DNA from: Leucoraja erinacea
Taxonomy: Eukaryota
Length of the DNA: 64,000 nt
NCBI RefSeq assembly: GCF_028641065.1
Contig: NC_073379.1
Span: 21,948,001-22,012,000 of the forward strand
Reading direction: 5' to 3'
Below, piece after piece: positions 10,223 to 63,740 of this stretch (position 1 is the first letter of the stretch; each line of letters opens with the position of its first letter). The notes under the pieces were generated by a model, which was not told where the DNA came from, did no database searches, and saw only the letters and a program-made list of their open reading frames with translations. The position numbers and the translations under genes were made by a program.

Positions 10223-12043
10223 CTAATGTGGCTGTTTCGTAAGCAGTCCCCGTTTCTTGGCAGTACCTCTCCCATTTCTTGATGTTGGTGATTCCACCAC
10301 CATGTCATGGAGTACTGGGAACCATGGCTGTGTAGACCAGTCGGGCACCACCAAAATTCCAGATGCTGAATCCATCTGGATTTTGCGAAGTACCCGACTG
10401 ATGAGGCAGAAGGGAGGAAAGGCATAGAAAAAGAACTTTCCCCAATCCAGCGTGAATGCATCTACCGCTGCTGCCTCTGGATCTGGTTCCCACGCGACAT
10501 ACGTAGTTAATTGGTGATTCAGTCTTGATGCAAATAAATCGATATCTGGCTTCCCATATTGCTTTACAATTTTAGCAAATGCTTTAGGATTTAACATCCA
10601 TTCGATGTTGTCATTGAATTTGCGTGACCTGGTGTCCGCCACTGTATTTAGCTTACCTGGTAGATAGGTAGCTGAAAGCCAAATATGTCTTTCGACACAC
10701 CATTGCCAAATCGTATTGACCAATTTGTCGCATGATAAAGATTTTATGCCGCCCATATGGTTAATGTAAGCCACCACCGTAGTATTGTCTATTTGTAATC
10801 TAACATGCAAGTGATGCATATTGGATACATATGCTTTCAAACCATAAAAGGCGCCCAACATTTCCAAATAATTAATGCCCAGTGTAGATAGTAATGATGA
10901 TTCTAAGTTAGTCCATCTACCACCTGTGCTGGATATGGAGTTAGTTGCTCCCCAGCCTTTAGCACTGGCATCTGTTTGGAGTACTAAAGTAGCATTAGTA
11001 ATAACAATAGGACTACAATGATGCCAAATGTTTTGTATCCACCACTGTAGCTCTGATATTGCTTCAGGGGGTAAACGCATGACTCGGTCATAATGACCTT
11101 TATGTTGTTTTAGTGCCTTTACCTTTGCTCTTTGCAAATTTTGATAGTGCAAAGGTCCAAATTGGATAGCTGGAAATGCTGCTACCATTTTGCCAATTAC
11201 TGCTGCCACTTGTCGAATAGCTGGTGTTTTGTTAATCTTTAAGTTATTGCATGATTGTACTAATGCAATCATCTTTTCCCTTGGCAGGGTAATAGTCATT
11301 TGGACTGAGTTAATTGTGAAACCCAGGTAGTCCATTATCGTGGATGGATTTAACTTGGATTTATCTGGATGTAAAACGAACCCTAGAGCTTCTAGGAGCT
11401 GTTTAGTAGCTGATACTGCTGCTACAGCCAATTCCATAGTTTTCACAACTATGAGGATGTCGTCCAAATATGCCATGACTATATGATTAAGTTTCCTTAA
11501 CGTTGCCATGGCTGGTTTTAATATTTTAGTGAATAGTCTTGGGGCTGAAGTAAGCCCATTAGGCAGTGCTTTATACTGCCACAGCTCCCCCATCCAGATA
11601 AATTTAAGGTACCTGCTATAATCCTTATGTATAGGTACCAGAGAGTAAGCATCTTTGAGATCAATGCTTGCCATATAGTATCCTTCGGAAATCAGTTGTC
11701 TAGCAGTCACAAATGTTTCCATTTTGAAATGTATATACTTAACAAAATCATTCAAGGATGTTAAGTCAATGATGATGCGACATCCACCATCTTTTTTAGT
11801 TTTTGTAAATATGTTGGAAACAAATTCCAAGGGCTCATGTTTAGTTTTTTCTATGACCCCTTTGTTTATGAGTCTCACCAGTTCAGCTTGTCCCTCCTGT
11901 TGTTCTTTTTTGAAGAGAAAAAATACCCTTTCGGGCCGGTGTTGAACTGGCGGTATTTTTGAAATAAATTCAATTTTATACCCTCCAATGCTATTGAGTA
12001 TATATTTATCATTAGTGATCAATGCCCATGCTTCTTTAAACAA
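10223..12043 (-). CDS. DIRS pol: reverse transcriptase, RNase H and methyltransferase-like domain
   Basis: IDLKDAY, LPNGL, YLDD; TDAS..GWG, INYLE, IDN, ADTRSR; DLFAS and YAFPPF. Confidence 0.92.
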   Translation of the reverse strand: MFKEAWALITNDKYILNSIGGYKIEFISKIPPVQHRPERVFFLFKKEQQEGQAELVRLINKGVIEKTKHEPLEFVSNIFTKTKKDGGCRIIIDLTSLNDFVKYIHFKMETFVTARQLISEGYYMASIDLKDAYSLVPIHKDYSRYLKFIWMGELWQYKALPNGLTSAPRLFTKILKPAMATLRKLNHIVMAYLDDILIVVKTMELAVAAVSATKQLLEALGFVLHPDKSKLNPSTIMDYLGFTINSVQMTITLPREKMIALVQSCNNLKINKTPAIRQVAAVIGKMVAAFPAIQFGPLHYQNLQRAKVKALKQHKGHYDRVMRLPPEAISELQWWIQNIWHHCSPIVITNATLVLQTDASAKGWGATNSISSTGGRWTNLESSLLSTLGINYLEMLGAFYGLKAYVSNMHHLHVRLQIDNTTVVAYINHMGGIKSLSCDKLVNTIWQWCVERHIWLSATYLPGKLNTVADTRSRKFNDNIEWMLNPKAFAKIVKQYGKPDIDLFASRLNHQLTTYVAWEPDPEAAAVDAFTLDWGKFFFYAFPPFCLISRVLRKIQMDSASGILVVPDWSTQPWFPVLHDMVVESPTSRNGRGTAKKRGLLTKQPH

Positions 12044-12074
12044 GTGTAACCTTCCCCCTGTTAGTAAGGCACCC

Positions 12075-12782
12075 TTATTCTCTGTATGCTGGTAGGAACC
12101 AGATTTGACTGTTGAGACTCTTAACCTTAAGAGCCTCGCAGTTGTCTGGTGCTGTGTGCTCCTCCAGCACTTGGGCGAGCACCTTCTCCTGAAGAGGTTT
12201 GTTCGACAGGTGATTTATACTAGCCGCCATCCTCGGCTCCAAAGGTGCTCCAACCCGTGGGGTAGCGACAAAACGATCCACAACACCCAGCAGCTGTTCT
12301 TCCTGCACACCCTGCACACTCCCGATTCCTTCCACCTGCCCCTTTTCCAGACCAGCCCTGCCCTGGTCACCAATGCTAGCCTCCAGTTCTAGGTCTGAGG
12401 TTGCAAAGGGAAGTGCCGGACTCGACACTATGGAGGAGGCACCTGTCCTGTCTGCCCGAGAGCGCTGCTGTTCTCGGTAGACCATCCCCTCCAAGAGCTG
12501 CTGTATGCAACTCAGGCGGTTGTCTCTCCTCCGTTTTGGGGAGGACATTTCCCCCTCCGACGAGTTGGAGTCGACCGGCCGATTGGTTTTCCGGGTTGCT
12601 TTCCCAGCCCGCCGTGTAGGCTCTGGCGTGACTGGGACCGGCTCGGTCTCGGGAATTGTAAACCGCTCCTCGAGCGGTACTACCGCCGGTTGCTGTCCCA
12701 CTGGAATAGGCTCCTCCGGTGGAGTTAGAGCCCGGGCAGTTTTCTGAGAAAGTTTTCTGCGTTGGGACATTTTGCTCTGCAA
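12075..12782 (-). CDS. DIRS gag-like ORF1, C-terminally truncated
   Basis: First ORF inside the element; PDNCEALKVKSLNSQIW motif, then ends abruptly before pol. Confidence 0.7.
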   Translation of the reverse strand: MQSKMSQRRKLSQKTARALTPPEEPIPVGQQPAVVPLEERFTIPETEPVPVTPEPTRRAGKATRKTNRPVDSNSSEGEMSSPKRRRDNRLSCIQQLLEGMVYREQQRSRADRTGASSIVSSPALPFATSDLELEASIGDQGRAGLEKGQVEGIGSVQGVQEEQLLGVVDRFVATPRVGAPLEPRMAASINHLSNKPLQEKVLAQVLEEHTAPDNCEALKVKSLNSQIWFLPAYRE

Positions 12783-14171
12783 AAAAATTCTAACGCCAAC
12801 TCTCTCCGGTTTCCCAACGCACCGTCCACTTACCTGACGGTCCGTTTTAAAGTGCAGCTGGAGTGCCTGACTCCAGCTGCCGCCGCTGTTGCACTGCTGG
12901 GCGTAATGCCGCGCCTGCGCCCTGAGCGGGCTTCTTCACGAAGTCACTCACGTGACTCCGAAGTAAAATCTGGGATGGAAAATTCAGTAGGTTCACAAAC
13001 ATTATTGTAGGGAATTTCTTGACCTCAGTCCTGAATGTCTGACTTCTTTTTCCCTGACATGTGGTTTTTGAATCATAAGCAGGAGGAAATAAACTTTCCA
13101 CAAGTATTTGTGAAATCCATCTATTCCCCAGAGCCCTCTGTCCATTGACATCAGTCCCAGTCCCCCTATTCTTTCCACACAATCCCCCAAATTATTCCAG
13201 TCAGGTGTGTTTAATAGTCATATGCACTGGGATTAGAACAACACAATTTTTCATTGCTGCAACTTTGTAGGCACATTGATGCAACATAATAATACATTTA
13301 CAACAAACAATAATACAATATCAGTTATACATGGTAATAGCATTTGATTAACATTTGAAGTATTTAAAGCAACCTTATACAAAGTCCATAATAGTTTGGT
13401 GCAAGAGCCTGATGATGCCACAATGAACCTAAACACAACCAAACTTCAGCACTGATCTGTTATGGACAAATAACGGGATTGCTGAATCACAGTTCGGGAG
13501 GGAGATCTTCAGTGAAATCAAAACAACCTGTTAAATGGCAAGATTGTCTTCTTGAACCTGGAGGTAAAGGTTCACATTTCCTGAACCTTCTACCTGGCAG
13601 TAGCAACAAGAGGAGATCAAGCCGTGTGATACTGTTATATTGGCTGCCCTCAATATTTACTCTCATTCACTTACCAATCAAGTGACCACAACAGCCGATC
13701 ACCAGGGCAATCCTGTCCCCAACCGATCATAGATTCCTCCACATTCCCACTTCTCTGCAACATAAAAGACATTTGTTTTATTGTAACTTTTCCCAGTTCT
13801 GATCATCAACCTGACAAACATTTGTTTCTCTCCTGATTTTTTCAATGGCAATGTAGCTATCGTAATCTTGTACTTCATACTTTCATCATTGAGCCCAGCG
13901 TCTCGCACTTCACTAACCATTGCCTCAATGTGTCACATTTGTTTTAGTTAACTGTGTCTCAGAAGGAGTTTTCCACATGTTCCTTGGCATCCTTGAGCAT
14001 TGTTCTGTTTAACTATCTTATCTCTCATTTCTGTGTAGGTATTATCACTCGGTGCTTGTCTCTGTTAATCTCACACACCTTCTCCACCTCTTCATATTCC
14101 ATCTGCAATCTTCTTATAATTCGATGGAAAATGACCATGCAGTAGAACATGCAGTAGAAAATGTAGTAGAG

Positions 14172-14531
14172 GTACATCTATGGTGATCGGGAAGAGAGGA
14201 GGTGGTGCCACACTGAACTGCAACTTCAAACACTCGAGTGCAAATAGCAGGGTGATCACTATCCTCTGGATGATGGGGACTCCATGGGAAGAGTCCATTG
14301 TCTCTAATCATACCCGCTCCTACGCCACAAGTGGTCCCGGCACTGACAATGTAAATAGAGGAGGTCGATATGAGCTGGTGGGAAACCTAGACAAGGGAGA
14401 CGCCTCCATTAGAGTGAGGGGACTCATGTTGAATGACACCAACAACTATTTCTGTCATGTTTGGATCTTTGAATCCTCTAAGAAGAAAAATTATCAGGTG
14501 ACTCAGGATGAGACGAGACTACAGGTTTTGG
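14172..14531 (+). CDS. siglec15-like: Gene A exon V2: V-set domain without the Arg (FCHVW); native splice acceptor deleted, probably skipped or weakly used
   Basis: Open frame ATLNCNF..ILW..GDASIRVRGL.LNDTNNYFC and donor G|GTAAGG are intact. Comparison with B shows a 1015-bp deletion through the acceptor; only an in-frame GAG at 14169-14171 without a pyrimidine tract remains. Confidence 0.65.
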
Positions 14532-17991: not shown

Positions 17992-18354
17992 TTGATAATG
18001 ACAGAGCATCCATGGTGATTGGGAGGAAGGGTGCGACTGCCACACTGCCCTGCTCCTTCAGTCCCTCGAACAGGAATCCCAGCTCCATCACCATCAGCTG
18101 GATGAAGAGGAATCCACCAAAATGGTCTGTTGTCTTTCGTGACACTTCTCCCCGCCCAGCAGCAAATCACATTCCTGAAAATGTAAATAAAGGAAATCGA
18201 TTTGAGCTGGTGGGAAATCTGGAGCAGGGAGACGCCTCCATCAGAGTGAAGGGACTCAAACTGAATGACGCCAGTGATTACTCCTGTCACGTTTATGTCA
18301 GGAATTCAACGTTGACGACTGTGACTCAGGATGAGATGAAACTGCAGGTTGTGG
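17992..18354 (+). CDS. siglec15-like: Gene A exon V3a: V-set domain (YSCHV)
   Basis: Acceptor ctcttctctctgcAAG| and donor G|GTAAGG; 363 nt, phase 1-1; ATLPCSF..ISW..GDASIRVKGLKLNDASDYSC. Confidence 0.85.
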
Positions 18355-19975: not shown

Positions 19976-20338
19976 GTGATAATGACAGAGCATCCATGGT
20001 GATTGGGAGGAAGGGTGCGACTGCCACACTGCCCTGCTCCTTCAGTCCCTCGAACAGGAATCCCAGCTCCATCACCATCAGCTGGATGAAGGGGAATCCA
20101 CCAAAATGGTCTGTTGTCTTTCGTGACACTTCTCCCCGCCCAGCAGCAAATCACATTCCTGAAAATGTCAATATAGAAAATCGATATGAGCTGGTGGGAA
20201 ATCTGGAGCAGGGAGACGCCTCCATCAGAGTGAAGGGACTCAAACTGAATGACACCAGTGATTACTCCTGTCACGTTTATGTCAGGAATTCAACATTGAC
20301 GACTGTGACTCAAGATGAGATGAAACTGCAGGTTGTGG
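19976..20338 (+). CDS. siglec15-like: Gene A exon V3b: tandem duplicate of V3a
   Basis: Near-identical to V3a at an offset of 1984 bp; same splice sites; open frame. Confidence 0.85.
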
Positions 20339-22151: not shown

Positions 22152-22523
22152 TCCCAGCCACCATCCTGGAGCTGTTCGTTGTGAGCGACAATGGAGCTGG
22201 AGAACGCACCCTCGTGTGCAGGGCTGAAGGGAAGCCCCCTGCAAACATCACATGGATCGGCCCAGGGAACAGTGCACTGCCCGTGAACATTAGTGAGATG
22301 ATAGTCACACATGATCCAGAGAAACTACTGACTGTAGGAGAGCTGCTTCACCCCAGGCTGCCAGGGAAATACACGTGTGTGGCTGTGAATGAACACCAGA
22401 TGGACACACGTGAGATTCGCCTTTTCGAGGATGGACGAAGTGATGAAGCGTTCGCCATTCGGGCTGCCATTTATGCCGTCTATTTTCTTATAATTGGCCT
22501 CACATTCTGCTGGTTGAAGAGAG
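22152..22523 (+). CDS. siglec15-like: Gene A exon C2-set + transmembrane (TM with Arg: AFAIRAAIYAVYFLIIGLTFCWLKR)
   Basis: Acceptor ttctccTAG|. LVCRAEGKPPANITWIGP..GKYTCVAVNEH resembles Siglec-15 C2 (LCTAEGEPPPALAWSGP..GRYTCTAANSL). Probable donor AG|GTGAAC; read-through would stop at 22624. Confidence 0.85.
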
Positions 22524-25500
22524 GTGAACGTCTCCATCTCAGTTCCATTGCCAGTGTCAACAGGAGGGATGCTGCACCTCCAGTGACAGTGTCAGGTTCT
22601 TTTGTTGTGAATCAGGCAGTGTAACTTCAGAGATAAACAATGCTACATTCCCGCAGCTATGACCGTGTGTCTGTGGGGTACATGCAGCCGTCCTCACATC
22701 AGTCTGACTCAGTGGCCCCTCCCTCAGTCGTGTATCCGATACTTTTGCTACTGCATTGCTGCTGATTCCTGCATCCACATAGAACTCAAATTTCACATGG
22801 CTCTTAGCTGTCTTCCTGCATCCTAATCCATGGCTTAATCTCTACATTATCTGACAGTGGCCTTAGCAGCTTTGAATCGTTTCATCAACTTCTTTGCTAA
22901 TTCTTTCCCCAAGGCAGAGCAAGAATAGCTTTTCCCTGATCCTCATTTCCCACCCACTAGTCTCTGCATTCAGTGGATCAACCTTTATAGCTTCTGTTAT
23001 CATCAGTGCTGGTACACCAACAGACACATCTTCCACCTGCCTACACTTTCAGCATCCTGAGGGGACCATTCCCTTTGCGACTCCATCATCTGCTCTTCCA
23101 TTCCATTCAACCATTTACTCGGAACAGTGCATGGTGTAGCTTTCCAGGCTAGACTGTGCAATCAACAATATCGGTGAGCTCACTTTCTCTGTCTGTGTCA
23201 AAGCTGGTCAGCTGTGTTGTAGATAATCCATCTGCATTATGAACTTGTTTTCCTCTCTCTACGGGCACGGCCTGATCTGTGGCCATCTCCTGTAGCTCTG
23301 GCTTGCTTTTGCAGTTTCTACATGCTCTCTTTCTAAATGCCCAGATAGCTTTGTCAATCATTTATTACTATGGAAACCAGGCCTTACCCTATGTCATTCC
23401 TTTTTCACTGTCCCTCTCTCATTATCTCACTCTTTCTGCGCCAACAATCTTTTTTATTTTCTCAGCTATTCAATCAGAAGCATGAACTCTTTCTTTCTGC
23501 ACAGATGCCGCCTGACCTGTTGAGTATCCTCTGCACTCTGGAGAAACATTCCCTTTTCCTTGCGGATCACAGGTGTCCCCTGCATTATGGAGTGTTACGT
23601 GTAAGCTGAAACAACATCATATTTTTTTGGCACTAATTCCAAGAGTGAACATTTTATTCTTCATCTCATATTTTTCACTGGTGATTTGTGAATTCTGCAA
23701 GGGAGAATTTCCATTACTGGAACAGCCGGAATATGGGCTTTACCCAAATTGGACTGGTGGTTGGGTTGAAGGATTGGGCACGTCTTGTAACATGAGATGA
23801 GATCTCCTGGTAAAGAGTAATGACTACATTGAAGAATCTGGAACCCAGTTCACTTGTGTCTGAAGCCCGTGTGCTAAACTTTAATTAAGGCATTTACAAT
23901 GGTGTGATGCAGTTGGTTAAAGTAGTTTCAAAATGATAGAAAAAATGCCTACAGTAATGTTGTGAAGTTTATTTAAAAGAGGATTGGGAGATTGTAAGAC
24001 TGAAGTAAACATCTTAAAAAATTATGAGGACAGGGTTGATGGAGAAAATTGGTAAATATAAAACAGATGAAAGGAGCTTCTGCAAGTAGATAAAAGGAAC
24101 AGTCTCCAAAGCAAACAATGGATGAAAGCACCAAAAGTACTGCAGAGACGCTGTCTGACGATGCAAAGATAGGTGGGTTAGCAAGTGATGAGGACACGAT
24201 GGGCCGGCACAGACATATAGATGGTTAAGGGAGTGGGGAAAAAATCAGCTGAATTAGTATGATGGGGGGGAATGTACCCCGTAATGTTTCTTGTGCAATA
24301 AAAACCAGCATTCCATTTGTCTTTACAACTGCTTACAATACCTGCACGCAAGTCTCGTGTTTCACGTGTACGTACCCAATGTTAGGGGAAAATGAAACGG
24401 CAAGTTATTATTTGATTGGTATGTGACTGCAATCCTTTTCTTAACTGTCTTCCACGTATCTTAACACCATCACCCTCATTCTACGGCCCACTGGTTCCTA
24501 TTAGATTTCATTCCCCCAATATCAGTGCTATTTTGCATACCTACCTAATTTTTGCAAACCTACCTGTGGTATTTGATTAAAGATCTTCTGAACATGCAGA
24601 TACACTGCACCCACTCACATTTTCCTACCAATTACATTCTTGGAAAAAAACTCCCAGCACAGCTGTCAACCATTGAATAAATAAAAATGCTTGCAGTTCT
24701 GATTTCCCCAGTACAGGAAGTGTGGGAAAGCTCTTTGGAGAGGGTGCAGAAAAGGTTTACCATGATTAGAAAGTATGAGCTATGAGGAGAGGCTGGACAT
24801 ACTTGGATTGTTTTCTCTGGAGAGTCGGAGATTGAGGGAAAATCTGATAGAAGTATAAAAAAACTATGAGGCAGAGATTAGGTAGACAGTCAAAACCTTT
24901 TCCCCAGGTAGAAATTACTAAGGCTAGAGGGTATAGTTTTGATACGAGGGGCAGGTTTTTTTTGACATGGGGTGATGGGGCCTGGAATGCCCTGACAGGT
25001 TTAGTGGAATCAGATACAATAGGGCATCTAAGAGGCAATTAGATAGACACATGGATATGCAGGGAAGGAGGGATGTGGATCACATGTAGGCAGAAGAGGT
25101 TAGTTTACCAGCCATCAAATTTGGTAGGGACATGATGGGCTGAAGGGCCTGTTCCTGTGCTGTACTGTTCTATGTTCAGAAAAATACAAATTGATTTTAT
25201 CTAATCCTTTGAAACTTTCAAAATGTGCTGTTATCACATGTATAGATTCCAGCAAAATAAATGCTAATTGTGTGAGGCTAACTGGTGTGTAGTTTGTTTA
25301 TTTCTCTCAAACATCATTTGTTGCATTTGACACTTGCCAACCTTCAGAAAACATTGCAGAAGATGTGAATTTGGGGCCATTACGTCCAGTGCATTTTGCG
25401 GTGACGGGAAAGTGGCAGTGGAAAGGGAGACGTGAGTGTGAAGGGGATGAGTGCACCTGGGTGCAGGGGCAAAGTGGTCTCTTGTCAAGGCAGAAATGGG

Positions 25501-45986: not shown

Positions 45987-46035
45987 ATGCTGTTCATTTT
46001 GATTTGTGCCTTTGCACTGCCTGTCACCGCTAATC
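45987..46035 (+). CDS. siglec15-like: Gene B exon 1: signal peptide MLFILICAFALPVTAN
   Basis: ATG, hydrophobic core, phase-1 donor C|GTAAGT; paralogous to 1342-1390. Confidence 0.8.
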
Positions 46036-49890: not shown

Positions 49891-50426
49891 TGAGATGTGG
49901 GAAACAAACTAAGAAAGAGAAACCCATGCAGTAATAGATGGAAAGTGCAAACTGTACACAGCATCTGAGGTCAGGATTAAACTCTGAGTCCCTAGAGTTG
50001 TGAGTTAGCAGCTCCACTAGCTGCTCCACTGTGCCAGCTGTGTATATCCTCGATTAGTGGTCAGGTACTGCCTTAGTGGGTTCTTGCTGTGCCAACACTT
50101 CAAACCTGTGAAGCTCTGTGGACCACCCCCTGTCTGTGAGGGAAGTGATGTAAATGCAAGGTCTCTCCCGGACAGCAGCTTATAACTGTGAGAGATGTGG
50201 CTCCTGTGAAGAGCCAGCACAGCCCGGAGGAGGGGAACCACTGTTAGTGTCACAGTCCCACCTCCCCATTTCTCACAGCTCACCACATGGTGACGGTGAC
50301 AAACAGCACAGCAGCATCACAGTTCAACTGTCTTCCACAAGGGCAGGGACCCAGGGTGGGCGCAGCCTCCTACAGTGACTGTGGCCCTCAGCTCAGTCTT
50401 AACGTTACATCTCTGTGTCTTCACAG

Positions 50427-50807
50427 GCTTCAGTATCAATGGTTGGACCATGGAGATACCGGACAAGGTGATGGGGAGGGAGGGGAAGCTCGTGGTTCTG
50501 TACTGCAAGTTTGCTCACCCTAACCATCAATACAAAGACAACATCACCATCATCTGGAGAGAGGAGAAGACCCAGAATATCTTTTTCAAATACACAAATT
50601 ATCCATCAAGCAACAATTATAAAAATGAGATTGTGGATAATGTAGGAGCTCGCTACAGACCAATGGGGGACCCTCGGAAGAACGATGCTTCCATAATCAT
50701 TAATCAGCTGGGAACGACGGATACAAACAAGATCCTCAACTGTCGTGTTGAGCTCACGGGAGAAGCAGGAAAGTTTGGAAGGTCACATGGGCGAATCACA
50801 ATATCAG
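50427..50807 (+). CDS. siglec15-like: Gene B exon V1: Siglec-15-like V-set with the essential Arg (NCRVE)
   Basis: Same splice sites as gene A V1; 381 nt open frame WTMEIPDKV..YCKFAHP..GDPRKNDAS..CRVELTG. Confidence 0.9.
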
Positions 50808-53800
50808 GTGAGGAATGATTGTGCTGCAAACAAACAATTTGTCTTCCTTCCTGCTTCCTGTGATTCCAATGTTACTGGCATGGCTGGCAATTGTTCAAGC
50901 TGCTGACTTGTTGGCTACATCACTGGGAGATCATGCCCTGGTTTGACTGTCTAAAATACATCACGTTGCACTAAACTGAATTTAAATCTATTAACCAACC
51001 CTCAACCCACTTGCCCCGCTGATCACGATCCTGCTGTGGTTTTGATAACCATCTTCACTCATAATCCTCATTTCTGCCTTGACCATGATGTCCCGTCACT
51101 GTGGAATGGGGTGATGTCATTGCCACATCTGGCCTGCTGTTATAGTCACATATTATATCTCCTCCAGTTAAGTTTCAGATATTGGTATTGGTTTATTATT
51201 GTCTATTGCACTGAGATATAGTGATATTTTTCCGAGTGCCATCCAGACAAATCATCCCATTGAGGCACTAGAAACTGGAGATGCTGGAACCATGAGCAAT
51301 ACACAAAGTGCTGAAGACACAGTGGGTCAAGCAGCATTGGTGGAGGAAATGGACAGGCAATTATCCGGGTCGGTTCCCTTCAAACTGATGGAGTAGTAGG
51401 GAGAAAGATGGGAACGGGGCAAAGCTTGCCCAATGAGAGGTGGATGGAGGTGGGAGAGGGGGGGGGGGGCACGGGGGAGATGCTTATCAGATGGGTGGAG
51501 ACAGTGATAATGGCGAGTGGTGAAAAGTGGTAAAAGGTGTCAGACAAGGAAACAAAATGTAAAGGCGGAGGCAAATGGATGGAATGGGCCAGGGGAGATG
51601 GGCAGGTGAAAGACGTGATAGAAGGAACTATGGGATTCGAGGATGGGAGATGAATACGGGAGATGAAAGGAGCAGTGTGAAAGGGATAATGGGAGCAATG
51701 TGTGCACAGTGGGCTGGTGGAGGGGGGGGGAGGGGAGGTATTACTTGAACTTTGAGAGTTCAGTGTTCATACGGTTGGGTTATAAGTTACACAAGCTGAC
51801 CATGAGGTGCTGTTCTTCCTGTTTGAGTGTGTTCTCACACTGATAATACACAAGGCCAGTGACAGTCAGGTCAGTGTGGGAACAGAAAGAGGAGTTAAAA
51901 TGCGTCGGAACCAGGAGCTCCAGCAGGCCTTGGCAGACTGAACACAAGTATTCATCATATTGGGGACACAGAATGCAATAGATGAGGTTGGAAGAATCAT
52001 ACCTTAGATGTGTGCATCAGGCACTGTAAAAGAGAAAATAAGCAAAGTGAAGAATGTAGTATGACAGCTACAGTGAAAGTGCTACTAAAGAGTAGTGCAA
52101 TCGTTTAACGTGGTAGATTGGAAGATCGCGTAATTCAACCCTAGCATTTGTGAGGTCCATTCAAGACTCTAACAATAGGTAAGAAGTTGTTCTTCCATCT
52201 GGTGGTACCTACTTTCAAGTTTTTGTATCTTCTGGGTGTGAGAATGTCAGGGTATTAGTTGTCCTTGATAATGTGGTTGCTTTTTCGAGGCAGCATTAAG
52301 TGTAGAATGGTGAAACAGAGAATCAAAATTGACCCTGGCAGATTGAAGAGACAGCATTTGTTCAGGCAGTGTTAGTGAACAGGAAGGGGTAGTCCCTGGT
52401 TTTTAAAACAATGCTTAGACTATTACGTGAAATGGGAGAAGGGGTCAGAACACAGATGCTCGAACCCATTCTCATCCATAAAATCATGGCTAATTCTGGA
52501 CCTTGTTCATTCGCTGAGAGATCCCCCAGAGTGATCTCCATGAGACCCAGATAAACTGTGGACCTTTGGTTTGAACTTACTCAGCTACGTTTTACCCACA
52601 GCTTCTGCATAATGTGGATTGTTGATTGTAATCATGTATAGTCTTTTCGTTGACTGGTTAGCATGCAATAAAAGCTTTTCACTGTACCTTGGTGCAGGTG
52701 ACAATAAACTAAACTCTGGGATGGAAAATTCAGTAGGTTCACAAACATTATTGCAGGGAATTTCTTGACCTCAGTCCTGAATGTCTGACTTCTTTTTCCT
52801 TGACATGTGGTTTTTGAATCATAAGCAGGAAGAAATAAACTTTCCACAAGTATTTGTGAAATCCATCTATTTCCCAGAGCCCTCTGTCCATTGACATCCA
52901 TCAGTCCCAGTCCCCCTATTCTTTCCACACAATCCCCCAAATTATTCCAATCAGGTGTGTTTAATAGTCATATGCACTGGGATTAGAACAACACAATTTT
53001 TCATTGCTGCAACTTTGCAGGCACATTGATGCAACATAATAATACATTTACAACAAACAGTAATACAATATCAGTTATACATGGTAATAGCATTTGATTA
53101 ACATTTGAAGTATTTAAAGCAACCTTATACAAAGGGCATAATAGTTTGGTGCAAGAGCCTGATGATGCCACAATGAACCTAAACACAACCAAACTTCAGC
53201 ACTGATCTGTTATGGACAAATAACGGGATTGCTGTATCACAGTTCGGGAGGGAGATCTTTAGTGAAATCAAAACAACCTGTTAAATGGCAAGATTGTCTT
53301 CTTGAACCTGGAGGTAAAGGTTCACATTTCCTGAACCTTCTACCTGGCAGTAGCAACAAGAGGAGATCAAGCCGTGTGATACTGTTATATTGGCTGCCCT
53401 CTATATTTACTCTCATTCACTTACCAATCAAGTGACCACAACAGCCAATCACCAGGGCAATCCTGTCCCCAACCGATCATAGATTCCTCCACATTCCCAC
53501 TTCTCTGCAACATAAAAGACATTTGTTTTATTGTAACTTTTCCCAGTTCTGATCATCAACCTGACAATCATTTGTTTCTCTCCTGATTTTTTCTATGTCA
53601 ATGTAGCTATCGTAATCTTGTACTTCATACTTTCATCATTGAGCCCAGCGTCTCGCACTTCACTAACCATTGCCTCAATGTGTCACATTTGTTTTAGTTA
53701 ACTGTGTCTCAGAAGGAGTTTCCACATGTTCCTTGGCATCCTTGAGCATTGTTCTGTTTAACTATCTTATCTCTCATTTCTGTGTAGGTATTATCACTCG

Positions 53801-54932
53801 GTGCGTGTCTCTGTTAATTTTTATCTCACACACCTTCTCCACCTCTTCATATTCCATCTGCAATCTTCTTATAATTCGATGGAAAATGGCCATGTAGTAG
53901 AACATGCAGTAGAAAATGTAGTAGAGGTATACTACATCGACTGGATCCTTCCTTATCAATTCTGTTAGATATATTGTCCACCCTAACCCTAAACTCCACT
54001 TAAATTGTCAACAGAACTTCCCCTTCATCAAGAATTAAAACATAAATTGCTGTAAAATTAATCAGGTCTGAATGCAAGTCAACTGGAGGGGCGACAATAT
54101 CCATGTAGGACGTTGTGTTGCTGCTACTCAGGAGGGTTTAATCTAGTTTGTCAGAAGGTTGGGAACTGGAGCAGGTGGAGGAATTGAATGGGATGTAGAC
54201 ATCAGTTTAAGGCTGATCAGAAGGGCTGGCGGGGCCAGGTTAATGAACGCAGTGGAACTGATGGGCTGAAGTGTGTTTATTTCAATTCTATGTTTATTAT
54301 GTGTAAGGCAGATGAATATAGAGTTTGGATTAATGCATGGAACTATGATGTTGTGGCCATTAGAGTTTTGGTTGAGCGAGGGGCGAGACTGACACCATAA
54401 TGTTCCAGGGTTTTAGACATGATTTAGTAGCATTGTAGGTTATGTAAAAAAACAACCAGGCCACCTGCAATTACTCTATTCAATTTGATTTGAGAATTCT
54501 GCATATTATTTATAAAGTAGATGAATTACAATTACAGTTACATTTCACCGCTCTAGAGCAGCGCAGGAAGGTCAGGGACAGATGGGTCAGAGTGGGAGTG
54601 GGATGGAGAAACATGGTCACAGATGTGTAGGAAGGAACTGCAGATGCTGATTTATACCGAAGATAGACACAAAATGCTGGAGTAACACAACGTGCCAGGC
54701 AGCATCTATGGAGAAATGGAATAGATTCTACTTCAGGTCTGAAGAAGGCTTCCATTCACAAACATTACCTACTACTTTTCTCCAGAGATGCCGCATGATC
54801 TGCTGAGTTACTCCAGCATTTTGTGTCTATCAACATGGTCACAGACACAGGTAAAGTATTGATAAAAATAAATGTGGTTAATGCATCCGACCAATGAATA
54901 ATGTCCATATTTTAAATCTTTCTCTATCCGAG

Positions 54933-55301
54933 GTGATGTCAACGCATCTATGGTGATCGGGAAGAGAGGACGTGGTGCCACACTGAACTGCAACTTCAAA
55001 CACTCGAGAGCAAATAGCAGGGTGATCACTATCCTCTGGATGAAGGGGACTCCATGGGAAGAGTCCGTTGTCTTTAATCATACCCGCTCCTACGGCACAA
55101 GCGGTCCCGGCACTGACAATGTAAATAGAGGAGGTCGATATGAGCTGGTGGGAAACGTAGACAAGGGAGACGCCTCCATCAGAGTGAGGGGACTCATGTT
55201 GAATGACACCAACAACTATTTCTGTCATGTTTGGATCTTTAAATCCTCTAAGAAGGAAAATATTCAGGTGACTCAGGATGAAACGGGACTACAGGTTTTG
55301 G
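54933..55301 (+). CDS. siglec15-like: Gene B exon V2 (FCHVW)
   Basis: Acceptor tctttctctatccGAG| and donor G|GTAAGG; 369 nt, phase 1-1, open. Confidence 0.8.
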
Positions 55302-55489
55302 GTAAGGAAACAGTCAGTGTTGAGAAGTAAATGATAAAATCACATTGAACAACTGTGAGAAGAATGAGCTTTGTTCTGTTTCCTCTCTGAATATTTCACT
55401 CCATTCTCCCGCTGGGTCTCTTTCAAATCTTCACCCTTCCTGGTTCTCCCCTGCACCAATGAATAACAGTGACTTTTATCCCTCTCTAG

Positions 55490-55718
55490 GCTTCAGCCAC
55501 CATCTTGGAGCGATGGTGATAATGTATCTGGAGATACGTGTGTGTGCGGGAGAGAATGGACAGGTTGATCATTTCAGCTGCCATTTGTTGAGTCTACTTT
55601 CTTGTGATTGGCTTCACTTTCTAGTGATTAAACATAGATAAACATCATGTCTAATCTCCATTGCTGGTGTTGATGGGATAATCATGGGACCTCCAGTGAC
55701 ATTGTTGTCAGCCTCTGG
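55490..55718 (+). pseudogene. Decayed C2+TM exon relic behind V2 (gene B intron)
   Basis: Near-identical to 14722-14950; A-type TM sequence with stops. Confidence 0.8.
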
Positions 55719-57969
55719 TTCCGGTAATGGGGGAGGGGAGAAGAGAGAGTAACTCGGGTGTGAGTGATCCTTCATTATGTTGGCTGCTTTCCCAAGGAAT
55801 AAATGCAGTTGATGGGCGGGGGAACGAGGGAAAACCTTTTATTCATTCTACATGGTTAATCCTGAGCTTTCTGGTGCTTGTAATCTTAATCATCCATGCA
55901 ATTCCCCCTCTGACTATTTTTTGTGACTTCCTTATAACCCGTCTAATGCAATTTGAAGAACAGGGCTCTCTGCATCATTGCAGACTCCATTGAATTCAAG
56001 AATTTTGGATGATACTTTTTCTCTCTTTTATCAGAACTAACCAGTTCTACTGAAGATAAGCAAAATGGAATATTAATCAGTTATTCTCTGAACAATTATT
56101 GTAACTTAAAATAAGTTAGCTGAAGTTGCAGAGGTTGTATAGAGGGGTGGATTGGAAATAGGAAATATTTCTGAAAGGGTGAGTCTAGGTTTGCTGTTGA
56201 TGAAATTATCTGGTTGATAAATTAAGGAAGGAAACTGGAGACAGAGAACACAAACAAAGATAGAAACAGAGCTGCAAAACGTACGTCAGCTGCAAGAAAC
56301 ACGCTGCAGATCAGGCAGTGTCAGTGGACAGAGGAGAACTGAGTCAGTATTGCAGATGGATAACCTACTGCAAAACTTCTGATACAAACAGTGAGAAAGT
56401 TACCAGAAATTATTGTATTCAATGTTGACTCAATGGTTCAATGGGTCAACCGTGAATAGAACAATTTCTGGTGACTTGCTCGCTGTTTGTATCAGAACTG
56501 GCGAGTTCTACAGCATCTGCGATACTGACTCAGTTCTCCTGAAGAAGAATCACGACCCGAAACGTCACCGATTCATTCTATCCAGAGATGCTGCCAGCCC
56601 GCTGAATTACTCCAGCATTTTGTGTCTATTTTCGGTTCAATGGTTTCTTTATTATCACCTGTAGCAAGTACAGTGAAATACTTTTTTGCATACAGATCAG
56701 TAAGAATATCACCGTACATAAATAAGCACAATCCCCCCGGTTAGTACATCATGTACAGAAGAACCCACCGAGTCTGGGCAACAGTTGCCATTTTGCACCA
56801 TTTTACAGACCTCGATGCAGTGGCCACAGAGGCCCCATTGCAGCCGCCGCCTCCATTCCAGTTGTCCTGGAATGTTGACCCTCACCCTGCACAGCCCTAT
56901 TCAGCCCTTCTTCCCCAGGGGTGGTGTGCGGTGGGTGGGGGGGGCTCCTCCCGCAGATGAGATTAGGGAGCGGAAGTTAAAAACTCCTCCACCCCGCCTG
57001 ATTCCGTTAACCAGGCATTTTCAGGATGGCTGCCAGTTACTAGCAGAGTTCCGCAGGGCTCGGTGCTGGGGCCGCTGCTCTTCACGTTGTATATTAATGA
57101 TTTGGATGAGGGGATCGAAGACTTTGTGGCCAAGTTTGCGAATTATACGAAAATAGGTGGATGGGCAGGTAGTGCAGAGAAAGCAGGGTCTCTGCAGAAG
57201 AACTTGGATAGGTTGGGAGAGTGGGCAGAGAAGTGGCAGATGGAAAGGTGTGGAAAAGTGTGGAGTCATGTATTTTGGTAATAGGATTAAAGGCGTTGGT
57301 TACTTTTTAAATGTCGAGAGAATCCAGAAATCGGAGGTGCAAGGTGACTTGAGAATGCTGGTGCAGGATTCACAAAAAGTTAATCTGCAAGTCAAATCAG
57401 TTATAAAGAAAGCAAACGCAATGCTAGCATTTATTTTGAGAGGGTTTATATGCAAAAGTAGGGATGTAAAGCTGAGAATCTTTCAGGCGCTGGTCAGGCC
57501 ACATTTGGAATATTGTGAGCAATTTTAGGCACCATATCTGAGGAAGGATGTGCTGGCTCTGGAGAGGGTCCAAAGGAGGTTCACAAGAATGATCCCAGGA
57601 ATGAGTAGGATAACATCAGATGAATATTTGACGGCACTGGGCCTATGTTTGCTGCAGTTTAGAAGAATGAGGGAGGACGACATTGAAACAGACAGAATAG
57701 TGAAAGGCTTGGATGTGGAGAGGATGCTTCCACTAGTGGGAGAGTTGAAGACGAGAGGTTTTAGCCTCAGAATTAAAGGGACGTTCTTTTAGGAAGGAGA
57801 TGAGGATGAATTTCTTTGGCAGGAGGGTGATGAATCTATGGAATTCATTGCCACAGATGGCTGTGGAGGCAAAGTCAGTGGATATATTTAAGGCAGAGGT
57901 AAGTTGATTCCTGATTAGTGCAGATGTCAGAGGTAATGAGAAGTGCTTCGGGTGCAGAACCTAAGACCG

Positions 57970-58019
<50 letters not shown>
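57970..58019. repeat. Poly-C tract (shorter in the gene A copies)
   Basis: About 50 C; the homologous site marks the V3 duplication boundary in A. Confidence 0.95.
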
Positions 58020-58021
<2 letters not shown>

Positions 58022-58302
58022 CCCCACCTAATCAGTTAACCGCGCCTTTAGTCACCCTCCATCCTCCTCTCCGGTTCCTGGTCTTCAAGGTCAAGGCTCC
58101 ATCCTGGCCAGACTGAAGCTGAGATGTCATTACTTGAGATTGGCCCTTATTAGAATAGTGCAGGTCAGGAACAGGTGGATCAGAGTGGAATGGGATGGAG
58201 AATCCAAGTCACAAGTATGGATGAACTATTGATAAAGACTGTGTGGTTATTGTATTCAATTACTAAATCATATTCACACTTTAAAACTCTTCTCTCTGCA
58301 AG

Positions 58303-58665
58303 TTGATAATGACAGAGCATCCATGGTGATTGGGAGGAAGGGTGCGACTGCCACACTGCCCTGCTCCTTCAGTCCCTCGAACAGGAATCCCAGCTCCATC
58401 ACCATCAGCTGGATGAAGGGGAATCCACCAAAATGGTCTGTTGTCTTTCGTGACACTTCTCCCCCCCCAGCAGCAAATAACATTCCGAAAAATGTAAATA
58501 AAGGAGATCGATATGATCTGGTGGGAAATGTGGAGCAGGGAGACGCCTCCATCAGAGTGAAGGGACTCAAACTGGACGACGCCAGTGATTACACCTGTCA
58601 CGTTTATGTCAGGTATTCAGCGTTGACGACTGTGACTCAAGATGAGATGAAACTGCAGGTTGTGG
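58303..58665 (+). CDS. siglec15-like: Gene B exon V3 (YTCHV)
   Basis: Paralogue of V3a/V3b; AAG acceptor and G|GTAAGG donor; 363 nt. Confidence 0.85.
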
Positions 58666-59847
58666 GTAAGGAAACGTATGTTATGCTGTAAACGATAATA
58701 TCATATTGCACAACCTTAAGAGGAATGAGCTCCCAGTGACAGTGTAGACCAGCACAGGAACAGGCCCTTTGGCCCGCAATGTCTGTACCGAACATGATGC
58801 TACGTTAATCTCGTCTACCTGCAGGTGATACATTTCTTCCATTACCTGCATTTCAAAAAGTCTCTAAAACTCCACTATCGTAGCTGCCTCCACCACCCCT
58901 AACAGTATTTTCCTGGCACCCACCACCCTCTGTGTAAACAATAACTTTCCCCACATATCTCCTTTCATCTTTTCCCATCTGTCCTTGTCACAATACCGTC
59001 TATTCGTTGACATTTCCGCCGTAGGCAAAAGGTTCTGACTCTCTCTCCTATCCATGTCTTTCATATTTTTATAAACTTTCAACAGTCCAGAGAAACAGTT
59101 CAAGTATGTCCGACCTTTTCTTATAACTATTACCCTCTAATCCAGGCAGCATTCTGCTAAACCTCTTCTGAACCCTTTCCAAAGTCTCCTCATCCTTCCT
59201 GTAATGGGTGAAAACTGCACATAAAACTGAATGCAATAATCCCAGTGTCGTAACTAAAGTTGTATAGAGCTACAACATGACTTCCTGACTCTTGTATTCA
59301 GTAGATAGACACTAAAAGCTGGAGTAACTCACCGGGACAGGTAGCATCTCTGGAGAGAAGGAATGGATGATGTTTCGGGTCAAGTATCTTCTTCTTGACC
59401 TGAAACGTGACACATCCTTTCTCTCCAGAGATGCTGCCTGTCCCGCTGAGTTACTCCAGCTTTTTGTGTCCATCTTCGGTTTTAACCAGCATCTGCAGTT
59501 CCTTCCTACACATCTTGTATTCAGTACCTTGACCAATGAAAGCAAGAATACTGTACACGTTTTTAACGTGTTGCCATTTTCAAGGAGTTATGGAATTGGA
59601 TCCCAATATTTTTCTGTACATCAGTGGTATTAAGGGACTTGCCCTTGTATATTTTCCACTTGCATTCAACCTCCCAAAGACAACACTTCACATATGTTTG
59701 GATCAAACTCCATCTGCCATTTCTCTGCCTATATCTGTATTAGATCAACATTTGTAGTATCTTTCGACAGTTCTACGTTCATCTGCCTTCCTCATGATAC
59801 TCTTGCATTGTCAATAAGCAACACTACAGCCCATGTGTGGGTTTGAT

Positions 59848-59995
59848 ATTTGAGCTGCCACTTATGTGGACTGCACTCTTACGATTGGCTTCACTTTCTC
59901 ATGTTTGAACAGAGGTGAACGCCACTGTCTCATCTCCAATGTTAGTGTTGACGGGAGACTTGTGGCATCTCCAGTGATATTGTCATCAGCCTCTA
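59848..59995 (+). pseudogene. Decayed TM exon relic behind V3 (gene B intron)
   Basis: I*AATYVDCTLTIGFTFSCLNRGERH..VSVDGR..ASPVILS aligns to gene A IRAAIYAVYFLIIGLTFCWLKRGERL..ASVNRR..APPVTVS. Confidence 0.8.
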
Positions 59996-60066
59996 GCTAT
60001 GGTGGTTTGTGTCAGGTAATATTGACTTTTGAGGCAGTTCTGGCCAGTTCTTATACTTAACAGTAA

Positions 60067-60729
60067 AGGGCTTGTCCCACTTAGGTGATTTTTTAGGCGA
60101 CTGCCGGTGACTGTCATGGTCGTAGCAGGTTGCCGAAAAACCGGTGACTGGACCCCCCCCACGACAATGTCTACAACAACCTACCACCTAGTCGACGTTA
60201 AGCCATGACAACCGGCGACTCAATCGTCACGACTTAGGACGTCCACCTACGACCACACCTAGACAACCCTACGACCACACAGGTGACAACCTACGATAAC
60301 CAGTCAACCGACCTCCACCCGCGACAAGCTACGACAAGCTACCACCCTGTCGGTGACAATTGAAGACTTCTCTTGACACGGTAGCTGTCGCCGGTTGACG
60401 CAGGTTGACGTAGGTAGTCCCCAAATGAATTCATCGAAGTCAGCACCAGCGACAACATACATCATCCTGGCAACAACCTATGTTATCCTGGCGACAACTT
60501 ACGACAGCACCTACGTCAGGAGAAGACAAGCTACGACAAGCCCAAGATCGCTGAGTGTCGTCAAAAAGATTTGAACATTTCAAAATCCTGCGGCGACCAG
60601 AAAAACACTACGGATCTTTGGGCGACTTAAGGAGACGACTCACGACCCTACATGTGACACCCGGCAACCGTGTGGTGACCGCCTAGTCGCCCGTTGTCCC
60701 CTAATAATCGCGTAAGTTGGACAGGCCCT
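60067..60729. mobile_element. PIF/Harbinger-type MITE
   Basis: TIR agggcttgtcccactta / taagttggacaggccct, TAA TSD (60064-60066, 60730-60732), internal ctacgac-like repeats. Confidence 0.85.
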
Positions 60730-60957
60730 TAAGCAAGTTATTGAAATTGTTGTATTAAATGTTAACACAAAAGCTTCATGCTGCCCAGACAGAAGATGAG
60801 GTTGCTTGAGATTGGGCCTCGTTAGAACAATGCAGGAGGTCTGAGACAGACAGATCAGAGCGGGAGTGGGATGGGGAATCAATGTCACAGGCATGGATGA
60901 TGTATTTTTATAAACCATGTGGAATAGATTGTTAAATACAACTTTTCTCTATACAAG

Positions 60958-61320
60958 ATGGAAAGAAGAACACATCCATGGTGATTGGGAAGAGAAGAGA
61001 TTCAGCCACACTGCCCTGCTCCTTCAGCCCCTTGAACAAGAATCCCAGCCCCATCACTGTCCGCTGGATGAAGGGGAATCCACGGGAAGAGTCCACAGTC
61101 TTTAATCACACCCACCCCCACTCTGTGAACCCTCCCTCCACTGTCACTGTAAAGGGAGGAGGTCGATATGAGCTGGTGGGAAAACTAGACCAGGGAGACG
61201 CCTCTATCAGAGTGAAGGAACTCAGACTGGACGACAGCAGTGACTATTTCTGTTACGTTTGGGTCAGGAATTCCACACAGGAGACGGTGACTCAGGATGA
61301 GACTAAACTGGAGGTTGTGG
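60958..61320 (+). CDS. siglec15-like: Gene B exon V4 (YFCYV); no counterpart in gene A
   Basis: Acceptor cttttctctatacAAG| and donor G|GTAAGG; 363 nt; SATLPCSF..VRW..GDASIRVKELRLDDSSDYFC. Confidence 0.85.
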
Positions 61321-61970
61321 GTAAGGAAATATCTGTCTGTGTTGTGCTGTGAACGATAAAATCACATTAACAACTGTAAGAGGACATGAGATCCACTGAC
61401 AGCTGGAGCCGAGATCGGCCCAATCCATTGTAGGTTCCATTCCTTGCACTGGGCTTCCCTTGCTCAGCACTGCCCCTAGTGGTTGGAAAACAGTGCTGAT
61501 TCCAGCCAGGTTGCACGGAGCTCCCTGCAGCAGGATCAGAGATTCAGAACCACATTCACCAGCTGAACCTCCAGTCCCTGTGTCTGTGACATGGTCTGTG
61601 TTACAAAGATCCACAGACGGCCCTGGGGGTATCATCCGTCTCTTTCATTCACATCGACTCCGGTAACCTGTATGTTCTCTCACTGAATATTACATAGAAC
61701 AGCACAGCACAGGACCAGGCCCTTTGGCCCGCAATATCTGTGCAGAATATAATGGTTCTGTAAGTTAAACTAATATCATCTGCTGACACATGATCCATAT
61801 CCCTCCATTCCCTGTAGATCCATGTGCTTCTCAAAGACACCGTCATATCTGCAAATATTTCACTGCAGTCTCCTAGATGTGTCCTTCCAATCCCCATTCA
61901 GATGGAGTTTATCCGCACACACCAACAGTGATTAATTCAATTAATTTAATACATTTCTTCCTTCTCCAAG

Positions 61971-62339
61971 TCCCAGCCACCATCCTGGAGCTGTCCGTTG
62001 TGAGTGACAATGTAACTGGAGAACGCACCCTTGTGTGCAGGGCTGAAGGGAAGCCCCCTGCAAACATCACATGGATCGGCCCAGGGAACAGCTCACTGCC
62101 CGTGAACATTAGTGAGATGACAGTCACACATGATCCAGAGAAACTACTGACTGTGGGAGAGCTGCTTCACCTCACGCTGCCAGGGAAATACACGTGTGTG
62201 GCTGAGAATGAACACCAGATGGACACGCGTGAGATCCGCCTATTCGAGGTTGGGGGAGTGTTGCACCCAGGCGTCTACATTGGATTACCCATATTGGCTA
62301 TTGGCCTGATGGTATTTGCTCTCATCTCTTTGAAAAAAT
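61971..62339 (+). CDS. siglec15-like: Gene B exon C2-set + neutral TM (GVYIGLPILAIGLMVFALISLKK); cytoplasmic exons not found in the window
   Basis: C2 is near-identical to gene A up to 62249, then the stalk/TM is unrelated; strong donor T|GTGAGT. Confidence 0.85.
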
Positions 62340-62419
62340 GTGAGTTTGCCAATAACAACTACATTGTGGTCTGTTGTGGGTGTTCTTGGGACTGGTGGCT
62401 TTTTCAAATATTATAGGCC

Positions 62420-63740
62420 GGAAATGTGAACAGGAGGCCAGTCATCCCTGGTTAGGCCACATTTGGAGTATTTTGTCCAGTTCTGGTCACCACATTTCAG
62501 GAAGGATTTGGACACTTTGGAGAGGGTGCAGAGGGTTACAGAATAATGCCTGGATTAGAAGATTTTAGCAATAAGGAGAGGTTGGATTGTTTTTCTCTGG
62601 AACACCTGATGCTGAGGGGCGAACAGAATGTCAAATTCTGAGACATATAGAAAGAGTAGTTAGTCTTTTTTCCCCAGGGTTGAGATGTCAAAAACTAGAG
62701 AGCATGGGTTAAGGTGAGAGTAGGAATGTTTTAACGGAGATTTAAGAAGTGCCAATTGTTCAGAATGGTTGGTGCCTGGAACATGCAACCAGGGGAGGTG
62801 TGGAAGCTGACACGCTAGCAATGTTTAAAGAGCATTTATACATGTAAATATACATGGAATGGAAAGAGATCAACCATGTGCAGAGAGATACGATTAGTTT
62901 AATTTGGCATTATGGTCGGCACAGACATCGTGTGCCAAGTTCTAGTGGACTGGGGCTGTACCCCTTGAAGGGTCAAGTCTGCCCTCACCATTGCTACCCT
63001 GACAGACCTTGTCCATAAATGGGTATAACAGGGTCAGAATTTCCTGTTCATAATAATACAGTCCTGAGATAAGGTATTCATTGCCCTTGCCCTCCGATGA
63101 ATTTGTGGGAAGGTCCGGCTGTGATTCTGTCCTTAGATCCTCGCTGTTCTTCAAATGCTTGGGTATCATTTGAAAAAGGTTCTGAGCTTTCCAATTCAAT
63201 CATGGACCAGTTTGCAGATGATGTGAAACTGAGTGGGAATGTGATGGCTCAAGGTTTGAAGAGAATATATCGACCAGCCAAGTGCGTTGGGAAACAACAT
63301 GGGAATGTGAGAAAATGTGAGATAATACACTTCAGGAAAAAAAGCTGTCAAACTTCAATGCTCTTCCAGCGGTTACGGATTGGGGAATACCAATGTTCAC
63401 AGATAACTCACTTTATGTATCAAACGTGTGGATTTCAGAAAACAAATGTAATGTTGGCCTTTAATGCAAGAAGATATGAACTCGGGTATAAATGTCCTTG
63501 GTCACTATGCTATCAAAAGGACATGTGGGCATGGAGAGAATGTTACCAGCAGTGAGAGAGTCCAGAACCAGAGGGCACAGCCTCAGAATAAAAGGATGAA
63601 CCTTTAGAATCGAGATGAGGAAGATTGTTTTTTTTTTAGCCAGTGAATGATGAATCAGTGGAATTCAATGCCACAGGCAAAAGTGGAGGTCTAGTCAGTG
63701 GAAAATTTAAAGCGTAGATTGATAGGTTCTTGATTAGGTC
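62420..63740 (+). mobile_element. Old CR1 fragments
   Basis: [30 protein letters not shown] remnants. Confidence 0.7.

Follow-up and report, generated by a model that had tools for sequence, protein, structure and literature searches.

Siglecs described to date have one V-set domain followed by C2-set domains, Siglec-12 being the member with two V-sets (PMC6288428), and Siglec-15 consists of one V-set and one C2-set with a lysine in its transmembrane (TM) segment (PMC7226832, PMC10264397), literature with which the outline of the family in a preliminary description of the present sequence agrees. Here we examine two plus-strand genes of this family, which we call gene A and gene B, in a stretch of 64,000 nucleotides (nt) of the little skate Leucoraja erinacea (NC_073379.1), hereafter the window, and all coordinates are positions within it. 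Our subject is gene B, in which three additional V-sets stand between the N-terminal V-set and a single C2-set, a departure from the V-then-C2 rule that had been pointed out in the preliminary description and that our analysis upholds.

The exon for the leader (signal peptide) of gene B (MLFILICAFALPVTAN) lies at 45987-46035 and was located by tblastn with residues 1-52 of an Amblyraja relative (P0124, 92% identity), its phase-1 GTAAGT donor being read from the sequence. It is followed by the V1 exon (50427-50807, 381 nt; Pfam V-set E 7.5e-6), the V2 exon (54933-55301, 369 nt; 2.2e-13), the V3 exon (58303-58665, 363 nt; 8.7e-15), the V4 exon (60958-61320, 363 nt; 1.1e-14) and an exon encoding both the C2 domain and the TM segment (61971-62339, 369 nt; Pfam Ig_2/Ig_3/C2-set_2) that ends at a GTGAGT donor. 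V2 carries three N-X-S/T sites and V3 has no N-glycosylation site. All five exons from V1 to C2+TM are of phase 1/1 and, as read from the sequence, are bordered by an AG acceptor with pyrimidine tract and a GTAAGG or GTGAG donor. Joined together, the leader and the five exons give 1894 nt or 631 codons with zero stops, in keeping with the length of about 631 amino acids (aa) to the end of the TM segment proposed beforehand.

The identity of the gene was established with phmmer, the V1 exon being searched in a set of 1.84 billion representative proteins, and with subsequent cluster look-ups. Gene B is the little skate RefSeq locus LOC129695366, a prediction named there only "uncharacterized protein", and XP_055488229.1 matches its exons at 607 of 607 residues from MEIPDK through the end of the TM segment; the RefSeq models start at MEIPDK and do not contain the leader exon. 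The two isoforms, X3 (XP_055488229.1, P0123, 694 aa) and X1 (XP_055488227.1, P0145, 790 aa), differ only within the tail and both contain four V-sets. Full-chain analyses were performed on P0123, the joined exons serving only for the local length and identity count. Pfam finds four V-set stretches and one C2 on P0123, making five immunoglobulin (Ig) domains, so that the predicted composition of four V-sets and one C2 holds for the exons as well as for the protein.

The four V-sets and the C2 are also joined in one gene model outside Leucoraja, since XP_032874704.1 of Amblyraja radiata reads V1-V2-V3-V4-C2 in the same order as gene B. The last 24 residues of this Amblyraja model (P0003) match window positions 63099-63170 at 100% and look repeat-derived, and its 3' end is probably spurious. 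In Rhinoraja the models are fragments, V1-V2-V3 and V3-V4-C2, with type-specific identities, alongside further models reading V2(part)-V4-C2 (P0126) and V1-V4type-C2 (P0128). Judged from the sequences, a four-V plan that recurs in gene A and in Amblyraja radiata XP_032874704.1 lies far beyond chance.

Human Siglec-15 (7zoz) was the best match of V1 among PDB sequences with E 2.6e-12, CD33 and myelin P0 ranking below it. In Siglec-15, C64-C142 forms the disulfide between strands B and F and C95-C104 a second disulfide, while the carboxylate of sialic acid is bound by R143 through a salt bridge, CH-pi contacts come from W44 and Y154 and a hydrogen bond from Y87 (PMC10264397). Alignment to 7zoz shows that V1 retains the equivalents of W44, C64, C142 and R143 and has Phe in place of Y154; its CRVEL aligns to human C142-R143, its KF to R153-Y154, and NGW supplies the A-strand aromatic. 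V1 therefore possesses the strand-F Arg of a Siglec N-terminal V-set together with the A- and G-strand aromatics, and the Siglec feature that gene B does not share is the V-set followed directly and only by C2-sets. Aligning the V exons of the window confirmed the contrast drawn in the preliminary description between V1, with CRVE and the A-strand Trp, and V2-V4, with CHV or CYV at the same site and no Trp, and among all eight V exons of the window NGW and CRVEL are restricted to V1 and its gene A counterpart V1a. From its sequence, V1 reads as a Siglec-15-type domain in which the core of the binding site is present, yet not as a typical Siglec-15 domain. It is also more variable than V4, with 66-78% identity to other skate models as against 83-93%.

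The three V-sets of the stalk are Arg-less, the Arg site being His in V2 (CHVWI), His in V3 (CHVYV) and Tyr in V4 (CYVWV). The G-strand aromatic is also absent, and each domain starts six residues later than V1, without the N-terminal Trp segment. V4 resembles V1 in its closest solved relative, which by sequence is again Siglec-15 7zoz (E 1.6e-7), and for the AlphaFold2 (AF2) model of V4 (predicted local distance difference test, pLDDT, 79.5) 7zoz ranks first among fold matches (TM-score 0.80), narrowly ahead of CAR D1, Nav beta4 and TIM-3.

Database matches revealed that an Arg-less domain of this kind, which we term V2-type, stands between V1 and C2 in proteins of about 400 aa from many cartilaginous fishes. 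Its carriers include the chimaera Callorhinchus milii, the sharks Heptranchias, Heterodontus, Mustelus, Cetorhinus, Chiloscyllium and Rhincodon, the rays Pristis, Hypanus, Mobula and Narcine and the skates Leucoraja, Amblyraja and Rhinoraja, and NCBI names these proteins variously Siglec-15, Siglec-12, CD276 homolog, CXADR-like or uncharacterized. In a maximum-likelihood tree of 77 V domains the V2-type domains formed one clade (support 97/89) with the chimaera domain inside it, and the chondrichthyan V1 domains formed another (99/98) that is sister to the V domains of bony-vertebrate Siglec-15 with support of 94/70 only. By an approximately unbiased test, one shared origin of all chondrichthyan domains was not rejected (p 0.49). 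The V2, V3 and V4 of skates fall in one group (84/83) with the V2-type domain that two-V skate genes have in a single copy; V4 lies closest to these single domains, and V2 and V3 sit on long stems. This placement marks V4 as the V2-type domain that stood next to the membrane from the outset, V2 and V3 being additions of the skate lineage. Since the V2-type domain is present in chimaera, sharks and rays it is, by our own estimate, probably more than 400 million years old, and skates multiplied it to three. The suggestion in the preliminary description that gene B had reused V-sets thus requires correction, as the tree identifies the Arg-less domain as an ancient module, conserved in all Siglec-15-like receptors of chondrichthyans, that skates only multiplied.

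A comparison of 17 V2-type domains found conservation of the fold core and, in addition, of WMKGNP, of an N-x-T site in strand C' (NHT), of CHV(W/H)V in strand F, with His in 13 of the 17, and of VTQD in strand G. A word-based search with the V2-type domain of P0130 returned only chondrichthyan proteins among 41 candidates, a search too insensitive to show absence elsewhere. There is also a second chondrichthyan subfamily with the order V1(CRVEL/CRVDL)-V2'(YLCLVE)-TM, ITIM-like tails (ITIM, immunoreceptor tyrosine-based inhibitory motif) and no C2, represented by P0024, P0014, P0032 and P0045 (Leucoraja LOC129695285, Narcine and Mustelus), and its V2' domain is sister to the V2-type clade (99/94).

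RNA reads and contigs were compared over 56400-62399, from V3 to the TM segment. Record 6 of the contigs from sequencing run X1 (2306 nt) aligns to 60957-61320 and then to 61973-62338, continuing for about 1.6 kb of further sequence, and it omits the V4/C2+TM intron exactly at the predicted borders. In the raw RNA run X14 we observed a depth of about 2 on V3, about 4 on V4 and about 1.8 on C2+TM, the unique intron bins at 58000-58199 and 61400-61599 having zero depth. The first mates mapped to the minus strand, the orientation that most stranded libraries give for a gene on the plus strand. The greater part of the read table was transposon noise: in each of the four runs a short repeat family of partly palindromic sequence, located at 59200-59600 as well as at 54621-54834 and 56332-56640, attracted RNA reads by the thousand along with chimeric joints.

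The TM segment of gene B (GVYIGLPILAIGLMVFALISL) contains no charged residue and hence no lysine. The tail exons lie beyond the window and are taken from RefSeq only; the tails of both P0123 and P0145 carry LIYSIV, which fits the ITIM class [SIVL]xYxx[ILV], and P0145 also carries TLYSNL. Gene B may accordingly be read as inhibitory, its ITIM recruiting SHP-type phosphatases. Other skate genes, such as P0130, keep a Siglec-15-like TM segment with lysine (...PLIKFLLLLITG..., PLIKFLLLL) and are better candidates for Siglec-15 orthologues by this feature, yet they also bear a V2-type domain and in sharks and rays have Leu at the V1 Arg site. All of the elasmobranch TM-Lys proteins (P0130, P0131, P0134, P0010, P0137, P0138, P0142 and P0144) have Leu for the essential Arg, while the chimaera counterpart (P0007) retains Arg.

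Gene A (1342-22523, plus strand) was delineated by tblastn together with exon borders and open frames, and has the order V1a-V2a-V3a-V3a'-C2-TM, with the leader at 1342-1390, V1a at 6613-6996, V2a at 14172-14531, V3a at 17992-18354, V3a' at 19976-20338 and C2+TM at 22152-22523. Its V3 is duplicated (the copies 97.8% alike), it has no V4, and its TM segment contains Arg (AFAIRAAIYAVYFLIIGLTFCW, AFAIRAAIY...). No RefSeq protein for gene A was found among the database matches obtained. From intron 1 to behind V3 the DNA of the two genes is 95-98% identical (introns 97-98%), whereas the V1 exons are 88.6% identical in DNA and 75% in amino acids, with an upstream flank at 90% (flank and exon together 50000-50807 against 6148-6996). 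The identity boundary after V1 is sharp and marks the edge of a recent conversion or duplication tract. V1a has two cysteines that gene B does not have, one before SINGW and one in the G-strand FDCPHG; Amblyraja P0004 has both and P0124 neither, which looks like the paired gain or loss of a disulfide. Within intron 1 of gene A lies a DIRS-like retroelement (9408-12782, minus strand) with reverse transcriptase and tyrosine-recombinase open reading frames, and this insertion accounts for a 4-kb stretch that is missing from gene B.

The ratio of nonsynonymous to synonymous substitution rates (dN/dS) between genes A and B was 1.56 for V1, 1.14 for V2, 1.0-1.2 for V3 and 0.40 for C2, values that rest on 15-43 changes per exon and are not significant alone, and for pairs of V2, V3 and V4 within gene B it was 0.68-1.24. 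By these comparisons the V domains clearly evolve faster than C2, and V1 fastest. Such a rate would fit a rapidly evolving immune receptor, with diversifying selection and weak constraint not distinguished. Two relics of TM exons of gene A type lie on the plus strand in introns of gene B. The first, at 55565-55716 in the intron after V2, contains stops and matches gene A 22463-22592 and the second relic by blastn, and the second, at 59843-59994 in the intron after V3, matches the first and gene A 22457-22594.

Gene B is one of several cases in which V-sets have multiplied in this family. We found three V domains in Callorhinchus, two V2-type domains in Heptranchias and two V-sets each in gar, in salamanders and in one characiform, and the lungfish Protopterus annectens encodes a protein (XP_043935463.1, P0001) in which seven V-sets of Siglec-15 type, all bearing the Arg, stand in tandem ahead of a single C2 and a TM segment, an extreme and independent case. 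The sequences point to V multiplication as recurrent in the Siglec-15 lineage, and as independent in lungfish, gar, salamanders and the characiform.

From this evidence we consider it fairly probable that gene B is a V1-V2-V3-V4-C2-TM-ITIM receptor with a sialic-acid-binding V1 on a flexible stalk and an inhibitory function, that gene A is its activating partner, and that the stalk arose by the copying of V and TM exons. Gene B would be a type-I membrane receptor of a chondrichthyan Siglec-15-like family whose V1 binds a sialylated ligand and whose ITIM recruits SHP-type phosphatases. The three V2-type domains and the C2 would serve mainly as a long, flexibly linked stalk that holds V1 at a height of about five Ig domains from the membrane, above the cell's own glycan coat, which may favour ligands on other cells over those on the same cell. 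Gene A would be the activating partner by analogy with Siglec-5/-14 and Siglec-11/-16, the concept of paired receptors being described for Siglecs (PMC6288428). The stalk would have grown as a block consisting of a V exon and a TM exon was copied in tandem, the inner TM exons dying afterwards and leaving their relics in two introns. An AlphaFold2 model of the full protein, suggested in the preliminary description as a check, could be produced and gave no confident inter-domain geometry, with linkers below pLDDT 50 and a predicted TM-score (pTM) of 0.43. The flexibility of the stalk is read from these linkers, which allow nothing firm to be said of its rigidity.

Several observations weigh against this reading. 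As regards V1, the column of Y87 holds Gln and the C95-C104 disulfide of tetrapod Siglec-15 is absent, as it is from all chondrichthyan V1 domains (KYTNY instead), both cysteines being present in bird, mammal and lungfish; zebrafish Siglec-15 moreover bound the tested glycans poorly (PMC7226832). In V4 of the Amblyraja model the strand-F cysteine is replaced by Arg (FRYVWV). As regards the transcript, the run X1 contig is 97.8% identical to the window in V4 and about 90% in C2+TM, with in-frame indels of 12 and 6 bases, and therefore derives from a relative or a paralogue, and that run X1 is RNA at all is only a guess. Expression was very low in the three raw-read runs. Support from RNA for splicing is partial, as it concerns the joint between V4 and C2+TM, while the joining of V1 to V2, V3 and V4 is taken from the gene models of three skates. 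The preliminary description had named, as outcomes that would overturn it, a V1 spliced directly to C2 and a V2-V4 transcribed separately; the splicing of V4 to C2+TM speaks against them in part, this being the joint covered. Finally, dN/dS values of 0.7-1.2 and the long branches of V2 and V3 also fit weakly constrained or facultative exons, and in gene A the acceptor of V2a has no pyrimidine tract. Gene A does not have about 1015 bp that are present upstream of gene B V2 (14090-14177 against 53930-54944), leaving only a purine-rich in-phase AG where the exon starts (14172), and splicing of V2a may therefore be inefficient.

The alternative that survives best, which we regard as unlikely, is that the V2-type domains are not mere spacers and bind ligands or self-associate through the face of strands F and G (His-x-Trp/His, VTQD). 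The exposed F/G motifs and the N-glycan site are conserved from chimaera to skate, beyond what the fold core accounts for, and it is mainly in the BC, C'-C'' and FG loops that V2, V3 and V4 differ from one another, with dN/dS near 1, as would be expected of recognition loops. Loops vary in any Ig domain, however, the canonical sialic-acid residues are absent from these domains, and the AF2 models show no confident interface.

Somewhat less likely is that V2 and V3 are facultative or decaying, the main product being a two-V chain V1-V4-C2 and the four-V chain a minor isoform or an artefact of the models. In agreement with this, most chondrichthyan relatives are V1-V2type-C2 proteins of about 400 aa, V4 is the copy nearest to their single V2-type domain, and the Rhinoraja models P0126 and P0128 have shortened V-set series ending in V4-type and C2 domains; to these are added the dN/dS of about 1 in V2 and V3 and the degraded V2a acceptor of gene A. 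Exon skipping would also be neutral to the frame because every V exon is of phase 1/1. On the other hand, each of the window's seven V2-type exon copies has an open frame and conserves both cysteines and the AG/GT borders, RefSeq isoforms X1 and X3 as well as the Amblyraja model retain all four V-sets, and the depth of X14 on V3 is similar to that on C2.

We attach a lower probability still to a wider proposal, in which the V2-type domain would be an independent recognition or self-association module (again with the His-x-Trp/His and VTQD face) inherited from the jawed-vertebrate ancestor, the original Siglec-15 having been V-V-C2, with bony vertebrates losing the second V and skates tripling the module.

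That V2, V3 and V4 are separate genes or transcripts arranged head to tail is very improbable: the duplication unit did once hold a TM exon (the relics at 55565-55716 and 59843-59994), so the blocks may descend from independent units of one V and one TM exon. Against this, splicing connects V4 with C2+TM and the gene models of two species unite all exons. We rejected separate genes because stop codons interrupt the relic in the intron after V2 and because tblastn with the full proteins of relatives and their leaders gave a leader match upstream of V1 alone (near 45.9-46.0 kb), with no such match ahead of V2, V3 or V4.

Siglec-15 is usually described as an invariant V-C2-TM(Lys) protein "conserved throughout vertebrates", and a full-text search of the open-access literature yielded nothing on cartilaginous-fish Siglecs or on relatives of Siglec-15 with several V domains. 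The sequences place gene B in a branch of the Siglec-15 family that belongs to sharks and rays, is old and had not been described. In cartilaginous fishes this lineage is a multigene family with a second, Arg-less V, with putatively inhibitory as well as activating ends, with branches that have lost the essential Arg and, in skates, with stalks of V-sets, and so it offers a natural series for asking how stalk length and domain type affect the binding of ligands on the same cell as against other cells. It bears on the shape of the ancestral Siglec-15 and corrects the names in databases, which carry this one family under the labels "uncharacterized", "Siglec-12", "CD276 homolog" and "CXADR-like". 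As domain multiplication is common in receptors of the immunoglobulin superfamily, the value of the case is comparative and no new principle is involved.

Compared with known systems gene B stands nearest to Siglec-15 (human Q6ZMC9, 7ZOZ), which bony vertebrates conserve and which is the best solved relative of V1 and also of V4. Both have a single C2 next to the membrane, and V1 keeps the B-F disulfide and the equivalents of R143 and W44. Gene B differs in the three extra Arg-less V-sets between V1 and C2, which make five Ig domains and not two, and in a neutral TM segment with an ITIM tail where Siglec-15 has a TM lysine and signals through DAP12. Because it has neither the C95-C104 disulfide nor the TM lysine nor the two-domain ectodomain, we file it as Siglec-15-like and not as an orthologue. 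With Siglec-12 (Siglec-XII) it shares more than one V-set and would share inhibitory signalling (PMC6288428). Beyond the level of Siglecs in general there is no kinship in sequence, gene B having four V-sets and one C2 whereas Siglec-12 is CD33-related and has several C2 domains after its V domains. The V domains of Siglec-12 are of CD33 type with a B-E intrasheet disulfide. NCBI labels sevengill-shark relatives of gene B "Siglec-12", a name that we reject given their kinship with Siglec-15.

Genes A and B recall the paired Siglecs (-5/-14 and -11/-16) in their nearly identical ectodomain DNA and in signalling ends that would be opposed, with an Arg-bearing TM segment in the one and a neutral TM segment with ITIM in the other. 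In mammalian paired Siglecs the tip domain is kept alike by gene conversion, whereas in the skate pair the tip domain V1, at 75% amino acid identity, is the most diverged part. Gene B also resembles sialoadhesin (Siglec-1), whose long stalk has been argued to favour binding in trans, to other cells, over binding in cis, in holding a single V-set, here only predicted to bind sialic acid, far from the membrane on a chain of Ig domains, with the difference that the sialoadhesin stalk is built of 16 C2-sets and the skate stalk of three V-sets and one C2.

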